From contig JBLDXI010000029.1 of assembly GCA_047495785.1 (NCBI GenBank), positions 3,224,001 through 3,288,000 of the forward strand: 64,000 nucleotides of DNA. The letters are read 5' to 3'. This DNA is from Lepidodermella squamata (Eukaryota > Animalia > Gastrotricha). This document shows positions 631 to 37,974 of the stretch, one piece after another (the stretch's first letter is position 1; every line of letters starts with the position of its first letter). The position numbers and the translations under genes are program-made. The notes below the pieces were generated by a model that worked only from the letters and a program-made list of their open reading frames with translations, was not told the origin of the DNA and did not search any database.

Positions 631-2582
631 CTAATGTTCCTCAGGATGCCAGACGAACGATTTCGTCGGTTTCATCGTTGATCGAGACTTGTTAGCTTGC
701 GACGGCATAGGTTTAAGATCGCTGAGTGCAATTGCAGCTCCCTCAGTTTCCGTTCCTTCGTCGATGAACTGGTGAACAGCAGCACGCGGGGCTTCGACAA
801 CGCCGAGGGGTAGGATCTCGCGTTGATACACGTCGTTGATGATCTCGGACATGCCGGTGTAGAGCGCGCATAGACCGCATAAGACACCATCGGAGCCTGC
901 GATGATCTTGACAACACGGGATGCTTCTTTTTCTTCACGATAAGCCAAAAAGTCTGCGACCGCAAGCAGGACAAACAGAATCTGTGAAAACGAAAGCAAT
1001 TATTGAATTTTGAAATCGAACTGAGAAGAAGAACGAAACATAGAAATATGCTAAGAAGTGTCTCATAACAAACCGAAAAGTTAATTCCAGTAAAAATGGT
1101 ATTGCTCTGAAACGTTCTCATGGCCAAATTGTATTTGTCAACAATTCTAAGGGGTTCAGGGGATGCAGATCAAGATTTTGAATCCTGTTTGTCGCTATAG
1201 CTCTCGTCTTTAAGACCGTGCGGAAATAGGTTAAAATAGACCTATTCTCCCAGCTGAATTCAGCCGATAACCGATAAGTAACCTAAGTTCTGTATCCCAT
1301 ACTTTCAACCTTGAATTCTATGAAAGTTCCTGAACTATCCTAACTCCCAACCAACCAATATTAGAACCCTGAACCTAGGATTTTTTATTTTAGCTACAAG
1401 GTGTCCTAAGCTACGTAGAATAATTATCGATGCTGGGTTCCAAGACGGCTGATATCGGGAAAATCACTGATTGGTAAAATCGATACTTTGAATCGATATC
1501 GACTCTATAGGATGAAGTATAATTCGTAAACTGACCGCTCATAGCTCGGATTACCCGTAATATGACCGTCTATCGGTTTGGCAAGATAACAAAAAATGTG
1601 AGATTCTAGTGAAGACTAGAAGCTCGATGAATAAAAACCAGACCCGATTAGGAATTTTTTTCTGGTAGTCTATTTTTCGACCGATATTAATACCCACGCT
1701 GAACATTGGATTCTTCATTTTCACTTTATGTTGCCCTAAGCTATGTGGAAAAATTATCGACGATAGGTTCCAAGCCGTTTGATATCGGAATTGATACTTG
1801 GAATCGATACGCGTTATGTTGCGATCGATCGGTTAGGCATGATAATACCAAAGTAATTGACAATTGACAAAATGACAAAATGAAACTCGAAGCTCCATAT
1901 TTGGGAGTTTCAGTGTCTCAAATTTAGACTTGGAACCCTGAGATCAGCTTTTTCAAGCCACGTAAATTCGAGATTTCTTGGTGAAAATATTCAAATAAGC
2001 TTATGCGAAAATGGCAATGATAAATGATAAATTTAAATATCCAGAGTCTCTGTTAAATTTAGGAACAATATAGGAATATGGGATATAAGGCGATTCCGAA
2101 ATAATTGTTTTTTTTTCAGACTTACATCGACTGTGATAAAGGTCAGTCGAAGTGACCAGGTAGATTTTGGCCGCCAGATGCAGACAGTCATGCATATGCT
2201 AAACAGCAGCCAAACCATTAGGTACAATCCAACTGCTAGAGGATTCGGCCCAGGTATCTAAATAATGACAAAAAATCCAGTTAAAAATTCAAATAATTCA
2301 AACAAAAATTCTCAAATTTACCGGCGTAGTCGGCGGTTGGAGGTAGAACAAAAGCACGTAGGACAGCCAGAAAAACGCGTAGCCGAAAAAGGCGATTGAA
2401 GCGAGCAGTTGCTTCTGAAACAGAGCGATAAACGCGCCAACAGCCTGCATGCAAAATCCAAGCGCGAAGCCCATGGCGAGGTTCATTGAATTCAGCGGGA
2501 ATACGGTACAATTGGCGAGATTCAGTACAACAGTTGCCAGGCCAAAGCCGAGCAGGCCGAATGGGCCGGCAATTATAGCCAT
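631..2582 (-). CDS. satP: GPR1/FUN34/YaaH (SatP/AceTr) family acetate/succinate channel, 3 exons (2582-2322, 2257-2126, 981-631), ~247 aa
   Basis: Exons join in phase 0 at GT-AG sites: MAIIAGPFGLLGFGLATVVLNLANCTVFPLNSMNLAMG...FGYAFFWL...|IPGPNPLAVGLYLMVW...LTFITVD|ILFVLLAV...IAGSDGVLCGLCALYTGMSEIINDVYQREILPLG. This is colinear with E. coli YaaH as recalled ([21 protein letters not shown]...SYGSFWL...LFALLAI...AGWIGLICGASAIYLAMGEVLNEQFGRTVLPIG). Six hydrophobic segments. Confidence 0.92.
1370..1830. repeat. Two tandem copies of a dispersed repeat in satP intron 2; further copies at ~3480-3630 (inverted), ~9190-9235 and ~24665-24740
   Basis: Shared core aattatcga..ggttccaag..g.tgatatcgg..aaatcactga...atcgatacttggaatcgata. 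Confidence 0.6.
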
Positions 2583-4179: not shown

Positions 4180-6419
4180 TCAATTTTCGCAGCTTGTTGG
4201 CTTTATCTGGCCGGTTGTCACCTCGCCGTGTCGCGTCAGTTTGTGACTCCGCAAACAGTGCGCCTGTCGAAACCTCCGACCGCACACATTGCACGAGTAC
4301 GGAAAAATTCCTGCGCAAAAATCGATGATTTTTTTAATTTTTCATGCCGAGAAAAAATTCGAAAAAATCTCACCCGCGTGGATGTACATGTGCATCGTCA
4401 AGCTTGAAAAAAAATAAAAATAAAATAATTAAATAAAATAAAAAAATAACTAAAAAATTAGACAAAATTTAAAAAATTTCATAACTTCAAATTTTTCATA
4501 ATTTAATATTTTTAATTTTAATTTAATCGAGTCCGAATCCCTGGATAGCTTTGTAGATCTTCATCAAGTTTAAATTAAGACTAGTGAGTCCCCTAGTTAA
4601 TTATCCTCAGCATGTTTATAACCATATATTGGCTGGTTTCCGGCTCGAATGTTGTGACCTACCTCCACTTAATATTATGTAAATTATGACATTAATATAT
4701 GAGCAGTACCAGTACCGTTAATAAACAAATTTTGGTGCGAAAACATGATTTAAGTGCTTGACCTACATTTTCTTTTTCAACAATTGCTAATAATAATTTA
4801 TAATTTATAAATGATTGATTGAAAAACATATAAAATATTGAAGTTAAAATTTTTTATCTAGAACACGAGCCGTATTATCAAGGAGTTTTTATAGCGGGAT
4901 AAATCTTAACATAGGAACCAATGAATCCACAATTTGGTTCAAATTCAAAATTGTTCCTTTCAAATATTCTAGAACTCAAACTGAGCAAGACGGATTGGTT
5001 ACAATTTGGCCTTGTGAATCTACTGTTGCAAAATGATATTTCTGGTTGATTTTATCGCAAGATTCGAACCCTCTCAAAGCTTACTGACCTTTCTAAAAGG
5101 TTCCACTTACACTTGCCAAGTTTCCTATGTCCATCGATACGTTCAACATATAATTTTAAAATAAATCCAATAGATTCCCTATATTAATTTGCAAGCTTAT
5201 ACTTGGATTTGAGCTTCAGACTGGTCAAATTAAACTTCGAATTCGCAAACATTTGTGACCACTTTTTACTATGTTCATGACTTCTCCAAATAAAAGCATT
5301 GAAGTAAAAAAAATTAGAACGCGCAAGTGGCTACACGATGAACCGAAGAAACCGAAAATTGAAGCTTCGAATGTTGTCCAAATAAAGTTGGAATGCATCA
5401 TCATAGTTCGGCTTTTGAGTTTCAATAACTTGGTTAGATTCCAAGCTTCGATTTTTATGAATTTAGAAAATTAGAGGTTCCAAGGTTCAAGAAACCTAAA
5501 AGGTTCCAAGCTTAAAATAGAAAGAGATGGAAAAGACCAAAACTGAATTCTGGGTTTCGACAAACAGCCAAAATAGCTGGAATATACCGACCCTAACTTC
5601 AATTCAATATATGAAGATCTAGGCATACTAGCCATGGCTTTGAAATGTCTAATGAGCTTCAGGTTTGATTAAATTTGCTCAAATTCGAATGGAAGATTGA
5701 ATTAAAAATCAAATTATGTCACTGAAATAAGGTTAAATTGTTTTCAACCAGCTAATTTTCGAAACTTGTTTATTTCTAAAATTGCGATAATATAATGTAT
5801 TAAAAATGGGAAAATTCGGAATTTTAATGAGTTTTATTTTTGAATTTTTTCTAATTTATATTTTTTTATAAAGGGCTCACTTGAATTTTCTGGCGAATTT
5901 TCGGCCACAGGTTTCACAGACGTGCGGCTGGTTGGTCGGGTCGTGCGTCATCATGTGATCCTTGAGGTGAATTTTCTGCTTGAAACCAGCACCGCACGTT
6001 CCGCACCGATGCGGTCGAATGGCCGCGTCGTCGAACTGCCGCCGCCTGCTGTTATTACCTTGCGTTGTCCCAGAATTAGCCGCAGCCGGCTCTGACGGCA
6101 CTGAATTATCGCTGTTATTCGAAACGCTCAACTCCTCGCTCGACAGACACATTGGCATTTCCATCGACTCGCAATCGGGCGATGAAGTTACCGATTCGGC
6201 CGGTTGGTTATGCAATTTTTCCATAATTTTCAGAAATTCGCCGAAAATATCAGCCGGGCCCAGGCCGTGTTGCTGAAGGCTGATAAAGACGTGTTGGAAA
6301 AGTAGTGGCAGTGGCAAATTTTCCGGAATCGTCACGCTTGAATGAACCTCGGCGGCATGGCTCCGCAATTCGGCAAAATTGTCAAAAAACAGCCCACAAT
6401 CTCGGCAGATGACTTCCAT
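4180..6419 (-). CDS. C2H2 zinc-finger protein (one N-terminal finger plus three C-terminal fingers), 3 exons (~6419-5881, ~4403-4375, ~4310-4180)
   Basis: Fingers CRDC..H..EVH, HRCGTCGAGFKQKIHLKDHMMTH, HVCETCGRKFARKF|NLTMHMYIHAG|IFPYSCNVCGRRFRQAHCLRSHKLTRH. Splicing at GTGAG donors completes fingers 3 and 4. Stop TGA at 4182-4180. Confidence 0.88.
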
Positions 6420-20338: not shown

Positions 20339-22565
20339 TCAGTTCGGCCTATTAACAGTCACCGGGTAAATGCCGAACATAACAACCGGCGTGAAGCATA
20401 TACAGGCGAGGTAAAGCAGGCCAACCACGCGTTCGGTAACAACGGCTAAAAAGTGCCACTGAGCCTCGCGGTACGTTAAATTGTCGCTCCCTGTAAAAAC
20501 GCCGACAACATCGCCAACTTCCGCTTTCTGTCCTTCCCTCATTCGCCGGTCAGCCATGTTCGTTTTAGGCCTCGAATCGCCGCCGTTGATATCGTGAAAA
20601 TCCGTCCTATTCATGCCATTCATAACGCCTTTAACCCCATTCGCGACATTTTTCGAATTACCATTAAGGTGGTTTTCGTCCGATTTTTCGGTATTATTAT
20701 TACCGTTTTCGGTATTTTCGGGCGGAACTTTTCGGGTACTTCTCGGAATTTTTGAGCGAAGATTGACGACGGTTGCTACTACGCAAGTGACGCTGAATAA
20801 CCAATTTGGCATTCGAGTTGCTGTAGATTCGTTGTTTTCTTCAATCATGCTCAGAGCGTAGAGCGCAAAACCTTCGCCCAACTGAGGAAAAAATCTGGAA
20901 AAATCGGAAAAAATTCCAGAAAATTACCGAAAATTTACCATCGATATTGAGATAAAAGCCATTTGTAGATTAATGTAAATCGATAGCAAAGGTATATGCT
21001 GACTGGATCTAAAAATCGAAATAATATTTCCAAATTCAAGTCAAGATACCTTTGAAATTCGAAAATTGAAAATTCGGTGAAATTGAAAATTTTGGAAAAA
21101 TTGGCAAATTGATATTCAAGTCAAAAAAAATTGAACTTGATATTTGAAATTGAAAAAAATTGAAAAAATTAAATTTTAGGAATTTTGAATAATTTTGGAA
21201 AATTGAAACAATTTAAATGTGAAAAATACGAAAATTTGAAAATAATTGAATGCGTTTCTGTAAATTCTCACCTTGGCAAATCGCCAACAACCATTAGCTG
21301 GAATACGGAATAGGCTAGTAGGCACGTGAATGAAATTTCGACCTTTTCGACATGTCCCACTGGAACGCCGAAATTCGCAAGGTGAGCAATAGAAATAAGG
21401 CAACTGGGTATGACCACGTTCATCCTAAAATAATAAAAAATGCAGAGAAAATTCTTAGATTTTCAATTTTTTTACATGTAATATTCGATTTTTCGCTTCA
21501 CGGTGAAATGAAATTCAAGATGGTCGAACGAGGCGCTAGGATCGGCATAGGTAACATTGACCTTGGTCTGGGTTGTTGCTATCAAGTCCCATTGTTCATT
21601 TTCTTTGAAATATTTTTTCGACACATTGCCAACAAAATACAGCGACATGAATTGCCTCGTATATCGCCAACTAATTATTTTTAAAAAATCACAAAAAAAT
21701 AAAAAACATCGCGCAATACCTTTCCAGCTCTAAGGAACAGGTCTGGAAAATTTAGAAAAAATTCAAAATTTTAATTATTGAATATTTGAATTATTTACCT
21801 GAGTATCGAATGGGAAAAGCGTCAAATCCAATTCGCAATAGACCGAAAATGTCCCACCAGGGCTGTATAAAATGTAACCATTCGAGTAAACTCGAACTTT
21901 TTCATCGTCTTTCCCCATCAGGATGTAACGACTTTCAGAATTCATCTAAAAATATGAGAAATTCTGAATTTTAAAGGAATTATTTTTAAATAATTACCTG
22001 AGCTATGTCTGGCAGCCAAACTTCGTCAGCAGGGAGTACTAAAAAATTAATAAAAAAAATTCAAATATTGAAAAATTTAAATTTCAACTACGAACCAACA
22101 TATTCAACGCAATTGTATGGAAAGTCTTTAATCCAATATCTGAAATGATCCTCCCATCTCTGAAATAATGAAATTTCATTGAATTTCAAAAATTTCAATT
22201 TTTTTTATATTTTACCACACTCAGATATCCGGTAATTTTCATAATTCGCTCTCTCTCAATCTAAAACAAAATTTTGAATTTCAAAAAAAAATTAAACAAA
22301 ATTAATATCTTACGACGTCGTTGATTTGGGACACGCCAAAGGTGAGGTAAACATCAACAGAGTCATTAGCGTTCAACCTTGGCCGTTGCCATTTTCCATA
22401 TGGAGTAAAATATTTATCCGCAACTTGTTGCTCTGTAACCGCAGATTCAGGATTTTCACGCTTGCAACCAGCCGCTTTTGTTTTCGGCGGGCCAAATGGC
22501 TGTTGGCAGCGAGCCAAAATTATTAAATTAATCAGCAATAAATTAATTTTTATAAAATTCGACAT
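20339..22565 (-). CDS. Cys-loop ligand-gated ion channel subunit (nAChR-like, non-alpha), paralog 2, ~10 exons
   Basis: Signal peptide, RPRLNANDSVDVYLTF, WLPDIAQ, Cys-loop CELDLTLFPFDTQ|TC, SWRY, M1 NVVIPSCLIS, M2 EKVEISFTCLLAYSVFQLMV, M3 IPLLSIY, and REAQWHFLAVVTER leading into M4. Confidence 0.92.
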
Positions 22566-22635
22566 TTTTCAGAAATTTCTAAAAAATTTGAAAAATTTGA
22601 AAAAATTATTTCAATTTTTTTAAATGGATTTTTTT

Positions 22636-25626
22636 TTATAAAGCAACGCTTGGGTAAATATTGAACATGACTATAGGTGTTATGACAATACATAGAATGT
22701 ATAAAATGGCGCCGAGTCTTTCAATAACACGGGCTACAAATCGCCACTGCTCCTCGCGGAACTCGAGTTCCGCCTCGCGGTACGCCGAATTTCCGCCAAA
22801 AATGACGTCATCGATCGAACTTTTCGATTTTCTCCCCATAGAATTCGGCCCATAATCGTGGATTCCAATGATAATTGAAGATATACCGAATTTGTACGTA
22901 GAATTGTCTTTCGGAATTTTCGAACCGAGCCCAATGGCGTGGCCAATGAAGCGGAACGTGTTGTAGGCGCATGGCGAAATTTGAACTTTACTGCCGCCGT
23001 TGTCTTCTACCATACTTAATGCGTATAATGCGCCGCCCTCGATTAGCTAAAATTAAAAGATTAATTTAGAAATCGATATCAGACGTGTTTTTTTGAGACG
23101 GAAACCATTGAGAGGGCAATATAGGCCATTTGAAGATCGATGTAGATTAACAGAAGAGGAATGTTGTCACTTGATCTGATGGGGAGAAAAAAATCGCAAT
23201 TTTGAGTCACGCAAATTCCGAGCCGCGTTACAGATTTTTTCGACCTAATACCTTGGCATATCGGCGACGACCATGCGTTGAAACACGGAATAGGCCAATA
23301 GGCATGTGAAGGAAATTTCGACTTTTTCAATATGGCCGACTGGAACGCCGAAGTTAGCCATGTGGGCGATTGAAATTAAAACGCTTGGAATGATCACATT
23401 GAGCCTAGTTGAAAAAAAATCAATTTTCAAATTCAAAAATTCAAAAATTTGAAAGTTATTCAACAATTTTTTTTATTCTAATATATTATTTGTTAATTTT
23501 TCAGTTTTTTTATTAATCATGAATTTTTCAATTTTGTTGAAATTTTGAAATTTTACTTGAATTTTGGAATGTTTTCGAAATGCCCAATAATTCTTGAAAT
23601 TTTTCAAATTTTCCTGAAATTTGAAAACTTCAATTATTAAACGGCATAAAAACTCACATGTAATATTGGATTTTTCGTTTGATTTTGAAGTGGAATTCAA
23701 GGTGGTCGAAGGATACGCTTGGGTCGGCGTACGACACGTCAATTTTGGATTGGGACAATGAGACGAGTTGCCACTGTTCATTTTCCTTGAAATATGTTCT
23801 CGAAATATTCCCGACAAAATTTAGCGACATGTATTGCCGAGCATAGCGCCAACTGGAATAAGAAAAAATTAAAAAAAAAAACAATTTTTCAGTATTTATT
23901 CACCTTTCCAGCTCCAACGAGCATGTCTGGAAAAATGTGCATTTTTTAAAATTATGAACATTTAAAAAAAATTGTTTTACCTGTGTATCGAATGGGAAAA
24001 GAGCTAGGTTATATTCGCAATAAATTTCAATGGTACCACCTGGGCTGAAAATGGAGTAGCCATTTGAGTAGACGCGAACTTTCTCGTCATCGCGGCCCAT
24101 CAAAGTGTAACGGCCTTCTGAATTCATCTAAAACAAAGTTGACAAAAAATCAATTAAAAATGGAACGGTGGCAGGCGAATGACGCAAATAAAAGCTGCAA
24201 AATAATGGAAATTTTCGATAAAGTCCCAACGGTATATAGAAACGCCAACTGCTATTTGTGAGTTTTCATTCGATAATTAGAGGTTGATTTGTCTGGGAAT
24301 GAAAAAAATACCTGAGCGAGATCTGGAAGCCAGACAATAGTCGATGGAACGACTGGGAAAGTTTTACCAAAATTAAATTCCAAGAAAATGAAAAGTGCAG
24401 ATATTACCGACGTAGTCGATGCAACTCAGAGGGAAGTCTTCTCGCCAAGCTCTTAGTTCATCCACCCATCGCTGAAAAAAATGGAAATTAAAAATTAAAA
24501 TCAAATGTAAAATATGTAAAATTATTTTGTTCAAATTTTTAAGTGATGTAATTAAATTACTAGATTTCATGTATTTAAAAATTTTAAAAAATGTGGATGA
24601 AGTCCAAAATAAATCCGAGAGTCAAATTATAGGCTCCATCATTCAAGCAATCAGTGATTGATTTTGAGTATCGGAAAAATCACTGAATTGTATAATCGAT
24701 ACTTGAAATCGATATGGAATCTGAAGGCAGGATAATAACGCGTATACTTTCCGCTGATAGCAAATAATACGAAGATTTACTACTCCAACCCATTGGTTCT
24801 AATTTAATTTGATTTTGCCAATAAATCCTATCGGTTTTATAAATCAATCACTTCAAATCGAATTCCGATAATTCATTGTTTAAATAAAAAAATTGAATTA
24901 CATATTATAGTCTAAACAAAAACTATGCGTGCTCTTCAGATCCGCAGAGAAATTTGGTCCGATCTAGTAAATTACCGAAAATTATCGCATGTGTTGCCAT
25001 CGGGTTTTCCCGGGTTATTTCGGTAATTTTCCCACGTTTTCGGTAAAAATACGACAGGATGATGGGATCCTCACAGCTTTTTCAATTTCGAACTTCGGGA
25101 CGCCCAGTATTCAGGATTCCACGAGGCTGTGGTTTCAGTTGAGGTTTGCAATCCCATTCGGTATCAGGAAGCTTCGAAAGCTTCATTTTCGAGAATATCT
25201 CCCTTCATTGTAACGAGGGACTTGGAACCTTATTTTTGGGTAAAATTCCAGAGCTGAAGCTTCAAATTCAGTACTTCAACCCCAAAAAGGTTATGTATCA
25301 GAACAATTTTAGGGATTAAAATGGCTAACCACACTGAGGTATCCGGAAATTCTCATAATTCGATACCGCTCGATAACGTCGTTGATCTGCGAAAATCCGA
25401 ACGTTAAAAACACCTCGACGGTATCATTGCCGTTCAATTTCGGCCGTTGCCAATTGCCGTATGGGTCGAAATATTTCCGCGATATTTGCTGCTCGGATGC
25501 CCTAACCGAATCATTGTAGGGCATTGAACACCCTGGCGCGGGTGAAGAGGGTGGCCCAAATGGCTGTTGCCCGATCGTCATTCCAAAAAATGTCCAAAAA
25601 ACGAGAACATGAAGTAGTGGTAACAT
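22636..25626 (-). CDS. Cys-loop ligand-gated ion channel subunit (nAChR-like, non-alpha), paralog 1, ~9 exons
   Basis: Signal MLPLLHVLVFWTFFGMTIG, RPKLNGNDTVEV, RWVDELRAW, VWLPDLAQ, CEYNLALFPFDTQ|TC, ENEQWQLV, FKIKRKIQYYM|LNVIIP, M2 EKVEISFTCLLAYSVFQRMV, EEQWRFVARVIER and M4. Confidence 0.92.
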
Positions 25627-28228: not shown

Positions 28229-31200
28229 ATGCTTTATCGGTACATTTTAATGGCTGTGATAAGCTTTTCATTTGTTAAAGCTGATACTCTCAAAATCTTA
28301 CTACCTGTCCTACTTCCAATGACAGGCGACGATTCTCGAAACGGTGAAGGATGCCGAGCTGGCGTTGATGTAGCTATTGATGCTTTTAACGCTGGACGCG
28401 CGAGAGGCTACAACGTCGAGCCGATCTACTTGGACGAGGCAGGCGGTGCACTGCAGGCTGCGAAGCGACTAGCGGAATTCACAAGGCGCGGCCTAGGCCC
28501 ATCGGAACAGCTCGCACCAGTTGTTGTCGGGCCCTACTTTACCGGTGGATGCAAGGCAGTGGCGACGTTCGTGCACCACCTTAATATGGTTCAGGTAATA
28601 CAACATGTGTTTCTTTGAGGATTCAAGGGGTCAATTAACCGAACAACGACCAGACCCAGGATGTCTAAACTTGATACGCCTTTTTGCTTAAGGCATCAGG
28701 AATTTAGGGGAGTTTGATACTATGAAGTGATGGTGATGGCTATAGCACCTAAACTCAGTGTGCGAAGTATGATCCGGGAGCTGGGAGTGCTTTCGCGACA
28801 CCCCAGCACCCCTGTACTTCGCAAGGGGCAAGGGGCTCGTTCTTGTAACATGAAAAAGCAGCCACCTTGAAGGGGAGTTTGGGTGACTTTGGTCTTACTG
28901 GATCCACCTCTTGGAAGTTTCTAACCCTCAAGTTTCTGTTAAGTTCCTATGAGCCTAACTAGGTAGCGCAGTGCCGTTCTATGGGGGAAAAATTCCAAAC
29001 TTTCAGTATATAGCCTCCAAAAATCTTCGATCACCCTGGCAGAGGATGAGCATTGCTGTCACACCAAGCAACCATGCAACCTGGTCACATGACTTTGGGC
29101 AATTAGGATCTCCACAAATTAACCACAAGATAACAAAGATCAACATTACAAACGTCTAGGACTTCCGGATACGTTCATTGTGCCGTGGTAATAGGGGGTA
29201 GGGGGTATCGTACCCCCCCCCCCCTCCCTTCTAGTCTGCATGGCGAAGGTGGAAAACCGCAAAAAAACCCTGAAGGACCTTTCGGTCCGAGAATTTGGGG
29301 GTCTAGTTCAAGGGTCTTAGTACTTCGCCTTTAAGTTTCGAAGGATTCATTGTTTCACCCCTATAAACATGACCTTATTTTGCTGATTTTTTTTCTAAAG
29401 GTTGCCATGAGTTGTGGCGCCCCTGCTATGACAGCACAGCGACGTCTGCTGCCAAATTTCTACCGCATTCGTTCCGCTGGCGATATCTCCGTCTTCGCCA
29501 CGCTCCATCTCGTCAAAAATATCGGCAAGTGGCAACGAATCGCGATTCTGACATGGGCTGGCAACGTCTACAACTACCAAATCGCCTCGATTCTACAACA
29601 AGAATCACTGAAGCAAAACATTTCAGTGCCATTTTTCGAAATTGTCGCCGATGTGGATGAAGAAATCATGAGTCATCTTAAAAAATCCGACCTCAGAATT
29701 ATTGCCTACCCAGTCGCCGAAAATTCGATGATCAACAAGTTTCTTTGTCTTACCTATAAAATGGGCATGACCGGATCGCGGTACCTTTTCATACTGTCTT
29801 ACGTTGGCTATGCTGACCCAGACAGCTTGCCGTTGAACATTTCAGACGGTTGTACGAGGGATGTGATAAAAACTCAGTATTTGATCTCGAAATGGACCGG
29901 CGGCCAGTTGGAGGCCGATAATGCGACGAGAGTTTCAGAACTCGGCTACAATTTAACAACTTTCGATGATCTTTACATCCGCAAAATCGGCTTATCAAAA
30001 CAGGTATGTGTTGTCTGATGACATTTTTCAAGCAGCAAAATTTGCGAAAATTTCAAGAATTTCAATTTCAAATTCAAATTCAAATTCAAACTTGAAAATG
30101 GGAAATTGCGAATTTAGCCTGCGAATTTATCCCTCGATCTTGCTCATTTCCGTGACTAGTCCGAAGTTTTCTTATACTCTTTCCCATTTATAGAAACCCG
30201 CCGATCATATAAAACGCGTGCTATGTCACGATGCTGCACTGAAAGGCCTGTTAATCCTGGACGATACTCAGAAATCGCTGTTACGCCTCAACATGAGCCT
30301 CCAAAGCTACGCAACACAGCCTCGACAAATCGCTGCAATAGCTAACCAATCTGCTGCTAAGGTTGCTTACACTGGACTGAGAGCTGGCTGGTTGCAATAT
30401 TCCAGCCGCCTCGAGCTCGATAAGGACCCCCAGGTCGTTGTACAGTGGACGCCGCAATACGGCCCGAAAGTCGAATACAAAACAGTTTTGAAGCCGGGCG
30501 ATAAGAAGGATCCTTACTCCTACAGCGCTTACAATTTCGAAATTATCGACCCTGTTAGTTGGAACACGAAAAACGGCGAACCTCCGCTGCAGAATCGAAT
30601 AATACTGAAGATTACTGAGGACATTCCTCTAACCTTCCTATACTCAATGTAAAGTTTAGCAATCGTATCTTTACTAGTCCAAATCATTCTATCAATATAC
30701 TTAAGGAAATTTTCCCTCATAGTTATAACTGGTCTCTTGTTGAATGCGTCCTGTATCGCGTTTTCTGTCCCAACATCGATTTCACCATCTGTGGTATGCG
30801 TTATTCGCCCTGTTTTCATTGTGCTATCATTCGCAATACTTCACATTGTCATCATATCTCAGCTTATCAATCTTAAAGGCTCTCAAGGTAGTAGAGCGAT
30901 TTACAAAGCTCATGCCGCGACAACAACGTTCCACACAATCGACAATAGGCAGCCGTCTCCTAGAGGCGATAACGTTTTTCTAGAATTACCGCCAACGGTT
31001 TCGATAAAATCAGCTAAGAAATGCAATAGATATATTGTTATGATACCTGTCCTTCTTGATGTTGCAATTCTAATCATTTGGCTGTGTGCCGACCCGGTTA
31101 AATCTAACATTGCTACATCCTCGCTGCCTGTTTATGATCTAATTTCGGACACACTTCAATTTAGCGAAACTGTTGTTTGCTCGTCTAATAATTATACGGC

Positions 31201-36716: not shown

Positions 36717-37545
36717 TTGGATCTGAAGGAAATAAGCGATTTGAATGAAGTAAAAGATCAGGAAAATATTCAAAAGTTCTGGCAAAAAATTAAGAAATTG
36801 ATGGGTAAGAAAAATGATCGAGATAACCAAGCTCTGCAGGACACAGATGGTACCATGTACACCGAGCCAGATAAAATTATGGACATCGCAAGAAACTATT
36901 TTAAAGACTTGCTAGACGGCGAGGAAACAATTACAATAACAAACCCAATTCTAGTGCAAACGAAAAACCCATTTATGGGCAATAAATTGAAGCCTATCAC
37001 TAACGCAGAAATAAAGAATGCCCTAGGTCATATGAAGTCAGGAAAGGCCGGCGGCATTGACGATATAAAACCCGAAATGATTAAAGTACTCGACGAAATG
37101 GGCATCGAGTGGCTCAGCGTACTAATGAATGAAGCTTGGCACACTAAAACCATACCTGAAGACTGGTCCACTGCGATAATAGCACCCATTTACAAAAACA
37201 AAGGGTCGAAAAGCAAATGCGAAAATTACCGCGCCATTAGTCTACTAAGCGTCGTAGGTAAATTATACGCTGTAATTCTTGAACGAAAATTACGCGACCA
37301 TCTGGTAGGAAAATTGTCCAGCCGTCAATTTGGCTTCCAAAAAGGCAAACGGACACGAGACTGTATTTTTATTCTTAGGCAAATTATAGAAAAAACCCTT
37401 GAGTATAATCGAGAGTTACACCTGGTGTTCTTAGACCTGGAAAAAGCGTACGACCTCGTCAATAGAGAAAAAGTCTGGGACGCACTGAAAAAATTCGAAA
37501 TCCCGACTGATCTGATAGAAGCAGTACAAAGTTTCTACCATAGAC
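36717..37545 (+). mobile_element. Non-LTR retrotransposon (RTE-like) ORF2 fragment, N-terminal half of the RT domain
   Basis: KAGGIDDI.PE, IPEDWSTAIIAPIYKNKG...CENYRAISLLSVVGKLYA, QFGFQKG, FILRQIIEK, LVFLDLEKAYDLVNRE. Truncated before the YADD motif. Confidence 0.92.
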
Positions 37546-37546
37546 A

Positions 37547-37974
37547 TGATACCTGTCTTACTTGATATTGCAATTCTAATAATTTGGCTTTGTTCTGACC
37601 CGGTAAAATCTAACATTGCTACATCCTCACCGCCTGTTTATGACCTAACTTCGGACACACTTCATTTTAGTGAAACCGTTGTTTGCTCGTCTAACAACTA
37701 TACAGCATGGCTTTTAACTCTAGCTCTTAGCAACGCGTTGAAGTTGGTCTTCGAAGGCGTGTTGGTCTTTTTGATTGGTACGACAACGGCGATGAGGTCT
37801 TTGAGTGATTTTCGAGCGGCGCGTATCGTTGTTGCTAACAGCGCTTCACTGTTTTTCGGATCGTTGCTCCTCATTGTTGCATTGCAAACAGCTACAAGTC
37901 AGCTTTTGGCGCTGGCCATTGCGACTTTCATCCTTTCAGGTGTTTTGACCTGTGTTTTCGCTCATTTTCGGTAG
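37547..37974 (+). pseudogene. 3' fragment (TM4-TM7) of a paralog of the class C GPCR at 28229-31468
   Basis: MIPVLLDIAILIIWLCSDPVKSNIATSS...CVFAHFR* is near-identical to 31040-31468. No 5' part; it abuts the RT fragment directly. Confidence 0.88.

Follow-up and report, generated by a model that had tools for sequence, protein, structure and literature searches.

Does a SatP-type channel of an animal natively carry the Leu-to-Val change that is known from laboratory alleles at the pore constriction, followed by an aspartate, and if so what does this pair of residues say about the solutes that the channel conducts? The question is raised by a gene in a stretch of 64,000 nucleotides from Lepidodermella squamata (the whole of this stretch is called the window here). 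The original prediction, which was made from the letters of the sequence, had placed Val and Asp at the equivalents of Leu131 and Thr132 of Escherichia coli SatP and had read them as the mark of a substrate range retuned after transfer. By reading and translating the sequence we obtained an AceTr/SatP-type gene on the minus strand, the three exons of which encode a GPR1/FUN34/YaaH protein of 247 amino acids. Its features are as follows.

Exon 1, 2582-2322, minus strand: 87 amino acids, with the start codon, the IAGPFGL signature and TM1-TM3
Exon 1 codons, minus strand: F13 (SatP F17) at 2546-2544, A53 (SatP E57) at 2426-2424, Y68 (SatP Y72) at 2381-2379
Intron 1, 2321-2258, minus strand: 64 nt, GT-AG, phase 0
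Exon 2, 2257-2126, minus strand: 44 amino acids, with TM4 and the first half of TM5, the C-terminal end reading TFITVD
Val-Asp codons, 2131-2126, minus strand: Val130, GTC, at 2131-2129; Asp131, GAT, at 2128-2126, the final codon of exon 2
Intron 2, 2125-982, minus strand: 1144 nt, GT-AG, phase 0, lying exactly between the equivalents of SatP residues 132 and 133
Exon 3, 981-631, minus strand: 116 amino acids and the stop codon, starting with ILFVLLAV (the second half of TM5) and containing TM6
Exon 3 parts, minus strand: the codon of A170 (SatP A164) at 867-865, and a tail of about 57 residues beyond the aligned domain

Because the Val-Asp site falls at an exon-exon junction, transcript support was sought for it in two runs, X1 (RNA by guess) and X2 (DNA). 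The X1 contigs map to the three exons only (covering 2322-2583 over exon 1 and 669-960 over exon 3), and the DNA run X2 covers the introns as well. The X1 contigs join 981 to 2126 (1144 nt skipped) and 2257 to 2322 (64 nt skipped), both with CT..AC on the plus strand, and neither joint was found in the DNA run X2. Two X1 contigs span the joint 981/2126, one of them identical to the window and the other bearing the three variants present in exon 2 of a second gene copy, indicating that both gene copies are transcribed and spliced alike. In the spliced X1 contigs the mRNA across the exon 2/3 junction encodes T-V-D followed by I-L-F, and no variants were found at the Val-Asp codons (2126-2131) in X1 or X2. 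With X1 taken as RNA, which is a guess, the gene is transcribed and correctly spliced.

The second copy lies in the same assembly, on contig C46 (about 22470-24708; L003:5470-7708, minus strand), and may represent either a paralogue or a divergent haplotype. Its homology to the window extends from window position 1 to about 3604, a point some 1 kb upstream of the start codon; across introns and flanks the two copies show 83-91% identity. The encoded protein is 100% identical: all 25 coding differences are synonymous and none is non-synonymous (dN 0, dS 0.152; probability of all 25 being synonymous under neutrality, 5e-16), and the Val-Asp codons are the same in both copies. The protein, with Val-Asp included, is therefore under purifying selection, given a dN of 0 at a dS of 0.15; the same ratio, together with the expression of both copies, led us to reject a pseudogene or a gene in decay. 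Purifying selection tells us that the protein matters; an adaptive value of Val or of Asp does not follow from it.

The stretch around the exon 2/3 junction contains no intron in any of the eight units of related proteins examined (L004, L005 and L007), and so intron 2 was probably gained in the window lineage, or else lost in every other. This intron carries two copies of a 93-nt unit, 77% identical and 330 nt apart (1366-1458 and 1696-1788); the summed X2 contig depth over 1408-1491 is about 64,000, as against about 40-100 elsewhere, pointing to a very high-copy family for this repeat, probably a small mobile element. Other open reading frames in the window encode an RVT_1 reverse transcriptase (36717-37565, plus strand), C2H2 zinc fingers (5877-6419, minus strand) and an ANF_receptor ligand-binding region (29350-30018, plus strand; probably an exon of a receptor gene), and are consistent with an animal genomic context.

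Membership of the family was assessed exon by exon. Against PF01184 (gathering cut-off 25 bits), exon 1 by itself reached 29.4 bits, and exon 2 by itself, at profile positions 116-150, reached 26.1 bits. In phmmer comparisons with SatP structures, exon 1 aligned to 5ZUG_A with an E value of 1.3e-7 and no gaps over residues 6-80, and exon 3 aligned to 5YS3_A with an E value of 3.9e-5 over residues 20-62, matching SatP TM6. A hydropathy scan located six hydrophobic 19-mers (about 2-28, 37-55, 59-81, 96-114, 119-143 and 154-172), collinear with those of SatP. The diagnostic motifs are kept in part. At the start of TM1, where the family signature is NPAPLGL(M/S), the window has IAGPFGL and retains only P11, G13 and L14; the F-L-Y constriction (SatP F17, L131 and Y72) reads F-V-Y, with F and Y present and Leu replaced by Val; the TM3 motif SY(F)GFW reads GYAFFW, in which Y, F and W are conserved while G and A stand in place of S and G; and Glu57 of the S1 acetate site is Ala. 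On this evidence the predicted product is a single-domain, six-helix member of the AceTr channel family (GPR1/FUN34/YaaH, SatP/Ato; PF01184, TC 2.A.96). An Atlas search returned generic family matches only, and one candidate relative (P0002, 1628 aa with 12 matched stretches) was ruled out as a low-complexity repeat protein.

The reading of the constriction depends on the register of the alignment, which we determined against E. coli K-12 SatP from its RefSeq record (L006:932-1495, minus strand) with three aligners: MAFFT (with the exons as separate references), hmmalign (against a profile made from the 119 canonical members and not the window), and Smith-Waterman. All three methods agree that V130, D131 and I132 of the window protein correspond to L131, T132 and V133 of SatP, and that F13, Y68 and A170 correspond to F17, Y72 and A164; the alignment to SatP is free of gaps at the exon junction, and the identity is 58/175 (33%) over SatP residues of about 6-185. 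Phmmer against the PDB entries 5ZUG and 5YS3 likewise placed exons 1 and 3 in this register, and a published mutagenesis primer, which spells the SatP sequence as V-F-F-S-[L131]-T-V-L-F-A-L, supports this register independently (PMC8379382). The SatP sequence that the original prediction had aligned by hand agrees with the RefSeq record, the formal alignments kept Val at the 131 site with no shift of register, and the placement of Asp at T132, the retention of F17, Y72 and Ala164 and the change of the signature to IAGPFGL are all confirmed. From here on we use SatP numbering and refer to the two residues as Val131 and Asp132.

The significance attached to Val131 derives from mutants. SatP transports more lactate when it carries L131V or A164G, and Ato1 (Ady2) when it carries L219V, the effects of L131V and L219V being those that the original prediction had correctly cited; the side chain at 131 goes with the substrate, Leu with acetate, Val with acetate and lactate, and Ala, Gly or Ser also with succinate (PMC8379382). 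We asked how often Val occurs at this position in nature, using two samples: an exhaustive exon 1 search, from which we took 100 representatives that share at most 50% identity with one another (101 rows with the window), and a profile search that supplied 118 canonical members, most of them prokaryotic (119 rows with E. coli). In the first sample position 131 is Leu in 70 rows, Val in 12 (the window included) and a gap in 12; in the second it is Leu in 117/119 and Val in 2/119. Val131 is thus a minority natural state, with 14 occurrences among the 220 sampled sequences (the window counted in), and the state requires at least six changes on a tree of 79 rows. It occurs natively in proteins of the trypanosomatid group (Leishmania, Trypanosoma and Leptomonas), in a protein of the ciliate Stylonychia and in a protein from a Spirochaetia metagenome-assembled genome. 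CjAto5, a characterised broad-range yeast transporter, also has a native Val (V210) at the constriction Leu (PMC8779868; also PMC13316224). Given these relatives and CjAto5, a native 'L131V' was already known, and as a distinctive feature of the window gene it does not hold; as far as this sampling reaches, Val131 counts among the normal alternatives that occur naturally in the family, and it is a recurrent one.

The placement of the gene bears on when Val131 arose. The window protein groups with two metagenomic proteins, P0001 and P0151, with a third (P0004) as the next outgroup (support 95-100); these nearest relatives, all from metagenomes, are 49-56% identical to it, and the terminal branch of the window lineage is long (1.2-1.4 substitutions per site). 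Searching with a profile seeded by the clade plus the window exons yielded no close members other than P0151 and P0004. By these trees, the gene is in a small, fast-evolving, uncharacterised branch of the AceTr family. P0004 reads TFITV, as the window does, and a sister grouping of the two is not rejected (p-AU 0.086), so that Val may have been inherited rather than newly acquired; Val131 may predate the window lineage, and parsimony does not decide the matter.

The relatives also bear on the supposed transfer. P0001 (L004:176-2071) is an uninterrupted open reading frame of 631 aa with three tandem AceTr units on a metagenome contig, L005:2769-3780 holds at least two AceTr units, the second with an in-frame stop, and L007:130-2450 holds at least three units with introns. 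Their contigs look eukaryotic (tandem arrays, introns in L007, and YL1, XPG and AP2 neighbours), and a bacterial donor is therefore not shown by these data. The XPG-family protein encoded by L008, one of the relatives' contigs, shares only 38% identity with its best match in the window genome, and that contig is therefore not from a close relative.

A change at a single site is informative about substrate to the extent that the rest of the pathway is canonical, and here the window protein departs from the family at several other sites that the original prediction had missed. At positions that are invariant in 119/119 canonical members, N8 is Ile, P9 is Ala, E57 is Ala and F64 is Leu; in addition, N62 (116/119) is Gln and T63 (115/119) is Leu. 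E57 is part of the S1 acetate site on the cytoplasmic side. Its change to Ala (E57A) abolishes the transport of acetate by SatP_Ck, and the equivalent change in Ato1 (E140A) causes loss of function though the protein still reaches the membrane (PMC8379382). An entry in the reference list of the same paper describes the signature motif as essential for uptake (PMC8379382). With invariant N8, P9, E57 and F64 lost, extrapolation from canonical L131V at a single site is weak and unsafe. Seen in the alignment, the entry pathway (N8, P9, E57, N62, T63 and F64) is remodelled and the substrate is unreadable from position 131 alone; the other changes (N8I, P9A, E57A and F64L) look heavier than Val131.

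Some of these losses are not private to the window. An (I/L)AGPFGL-type signature is found in P0001 and P0151 (P0004 still has NPAPFGL), and E57 is absent in P0001, P0151 and P0004 as it is in the window. The signature change and the loss of E57, being common to the nearest relatives, are therefore clade traits and not changes made in the window genome, and the signature cannot be placed after a transfer.

An adaptive retuning after transfer that mimics the laboratory L131V, with enhanced transport of lactate or larger carboxylates, is thus improbable in our estimation. Its appeal lies in the lactate phenotypes of SatP L131V and Ato1 L219V (PMC8379382), in the broad substrate range that goes with the natural V210 of CjAto5 (PMC8779868) and in the retention of F17, Y72 and A164. 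Set against these are a Val that may be inherited (shared with P0004, with the sister grouping at p-AU 0.086), a signature change and an E57 loss that are clade-wide, a background without E57, N8 and P9, which canonical transport needs, and nearest relatives on eukaryote-like contigs, which put even the direction and timing of any transfer in doubt. Of the original prediction, then, the alignment, the retained residues, the signature and the mutant literature stand, and the step from these to a retuning after transfer toward lactate or an altered charge selectivity is not established, with Val a recurrent state in the family and perhaps inherited, the signature and E57 changes clade-wide, invariant residues lost and Asp132 alone specific to the lineage.

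Asp132 is different. Among about 208 other sequences with a residue at this position (89 in the first sample and 119 in the second), none has Asp, and Glu occurs in a single sampled sequence (P0031). The family norm is T, A, S or V (T in 101, A in 65, S in 15 and V in 13), and in each of the eight units from the nearest relatives L at 131 is followed by T, S or V. In these samples Asp132 is the only lineage-specific element; Val, the signature change and the E57 loss have parallels.

Where the Asp would sit was estimated from the pattern of conservation along TM5. It lies at the centre of the most hydrophobic 19-mer, in the fifth segment of the hydropathy scan. The conservation moment of TM5 is centred at +17 degrees from residue 131, on a face made up of residues 128, 131, 135 and 138; residue 132 is at +100 degrees, about 80 degrees off this most conserved face, on a stripe of small residues (132 T/A/S/V and 139 Ala), and the opposite flank of TM5 has a matching small stripe (123 Ala and 130 S/T). 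This geometry suggests that residue 132 lies beside the pore, where helices are in tight contact, and does not point along the pore axis; we infer the orientation and the pKa of the Asp from helical periodicity and family conservation alone.

Two further observations concern the surroundings of these sites. The constriction residues of SatP are flanked by G16/G18, S71/G73 and S130/T132. A rule that Gly follows the constriction residue (G18 and G73), transferred to 132 by pseudo-symmetry, was dropped, because an hhalign comparison of the TM1-2, TM3-4 and TM5-6 profiles for an internal three-fold repeat gave no significant alignment. A second Asp, in TM6 (AGSDG), was considered as a novelty and found to be canonical: its equivalent is position 156, where 116/119 canonical members have Glu. 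At this position the window (D162, codon at about 891-889) retains an acidic residue, the nearest relatives have Val or Ile, and E. coli, with Ile, is atypical.

The main rival to a functional role for Asp132 is that the residue is structurally silent, protonated or hydrogen bonded at a helix-helix contact, so that Val-Asp has no effect on selectivity and it is the whole protein, rather than the Val-Asp pair specifically, that is conserved. Position 132 is of the small-residue packing type on the flank of TM5, Asp takes up about as much space as Thr, the position is more variable than its neighbour (entropy 1.98 bits at 132 versus 0.63 bits at 131), and many substitutions will have accumulated on so long a branch. 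Countering this, the single Glu and the lack of any other Asp in the samples indicate that charge is normally excluded at 132, and Asp has been retained in both gene copies across a dS of 0.15. We regard a silent Asp as possible but less likely than not.

The explanation that we prefer, to which we would assign about an even chance of being right as a whole, is an expressed and selected AceTr channel with an F-V-Y constriction in which Asp132 acts as a titratable group and confers pH- or proton-dependent conduction of small carboxylic acids. By analogy with the SatP and Ato1 mutants, Val would widen the constriction slightly and admit monocarboxylates of the size of lactate. Asp, similar to Thr in size, would fit sterically and, as the most likely mechanism, would place a titratable carboxyl beside the constriction, so that small carboxylic acids would still be conducted, in a manner that depends on pH or protons. 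The Asp may in this way partly replace the lost vestibule glutamate, E57, rather than simply give 'more lactate'. Two considerations tell against the titratable Asp: if buried, protonated and hydrogen bonded to a neighbouring helix, it would leave selectivity unaffected; and E57 and the N-P of the signature, each reported to be essential to characterised family members, are lost, so that the movement of carboxylates could be gone altogether.

Alternatively, selectivity might have shifted from carboxylate anions to small neutral or cationic solutes (such as ammonia or ammonium), or the protein might be a non-conducting sensor or regulatory subunit. The loss of E57, N62, T63, F64 and the signature N-P, coupled with the gain of an acidic residue in mid-membrane, is in keeping with such a change, and published work suggests that some proteins of the family in which the pore is blocked or altered may act in signalling instead of transport (PMC13316224). 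The proposal is purely inferential, canonical features persist in the hydrophobic F/Y constriction, in A164 and in an acidic residue at 156, and the cited AceTr literature contains no direct evidence for a non-carboxylate substrate; we consider it highly improbable. A more ambitious version of either idea, in which the conserved mid-membrane Asp beside a Val-widened constriction, with Glu57 and the signature N-P gone, makes of the window gene a new functional class of AceTr pore in an animal (a proton-relay, pH-gated acid channel whose titratable group has shifted from vestibule to constriction, or a pore whose selectivity has passed from anions to small neutral or cationic solutes), also seems to us a slim prospect.

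We compared the window protein with the systems known in the family. It resembles SatP (YaaH) of E. coli and Citrobacter koseri (PDB 5ZUG, 5YS3 and 5YS8) in its PF01184 domain, six collinear segments and F17/Y72/A164, and differs from it in L131 (Val), T132 (Asp), N8-P9 (I-A), E57 (Ala), N62/T63/F64 (Q/L/L) and G73 (Ala), in an extra C-terminal tail of about 57 residues and in its spliceosomal introns. The laboratory alleles Ato1/Ady2 L219V and SatP L131V have the identical residue change at the identical constriction position, but as single changes in a canonical background, whereas that of the window is native and occurs without E140/E57 and the signature N-P; the Asp of the window is without counterpart in Ato1, which has Ala there (primer sequence, PMC8379382). 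Cyberlindnera jadinii Ato5 is like the window in combining a native Val at the constriction Leu with an altered signature motif, and it transports a broad range of mono-, di- and tricarboxylates (PMC8779868). It is unlike the window in having a Y-to-F change at the constriction and no reported acidic residue at +1 (PMC8779868), and as a fungal Ato it is not close to the clade.

Within the clade itself, P0001, P0151 and P0004 all lack E57, P0001 and P0151 share the signature type of the window, and P0004 shares TFITV. P0001, P0151 and the L005 and L007 units differ in retaining Leu at 131, followed by T, S or V, and in being organised as tandem arrays or fusions, whereas the window protein consists of one unit, sits on a long branch and carries an Asp132 that occurs in none of the clade relatives. 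The bilaterian and vertebrate ATO proteins described in 2026 have three tandem AceTr domains, often fused to Sua5, and are about 900 aa long (PMC13316224); AceTr genes in animals and the triplication of the domain were thus already published in that year (PMC13316224). None of these proteins is among the best 150 representatives for exon 1, and they are therefore not close relatives of the single-domain gene in the window. The tandem AceTr arrays of its nearest relatives mirror the triplicated domains of vertebrate ATO (PMC13316224).

Taken at the level of residues, the finding is a modest variant in a divergent branch of a known channel family, and not a new system: Val has precedents and Asp is new. 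The F-L-Y constriction is the target of laboratory evolution and engineering for organic-acid specificity (for example, for the import and export of lactate and succinate in cell factories), and the window gene provides a natural, selected instance of the engineered Leu-to-Val change, with a neighbouring acidic residue at +1 that is not among the substitutions reported in the cited AceTr papers. As a single-domain AceTr gene in an animal, it could also give a first functional entry to a group that the literature has recognised only since 2026. Its background, from which residues thought to be essential for acetate transport are absent, bears on how far single-site rules can be transferred between branches of the family.
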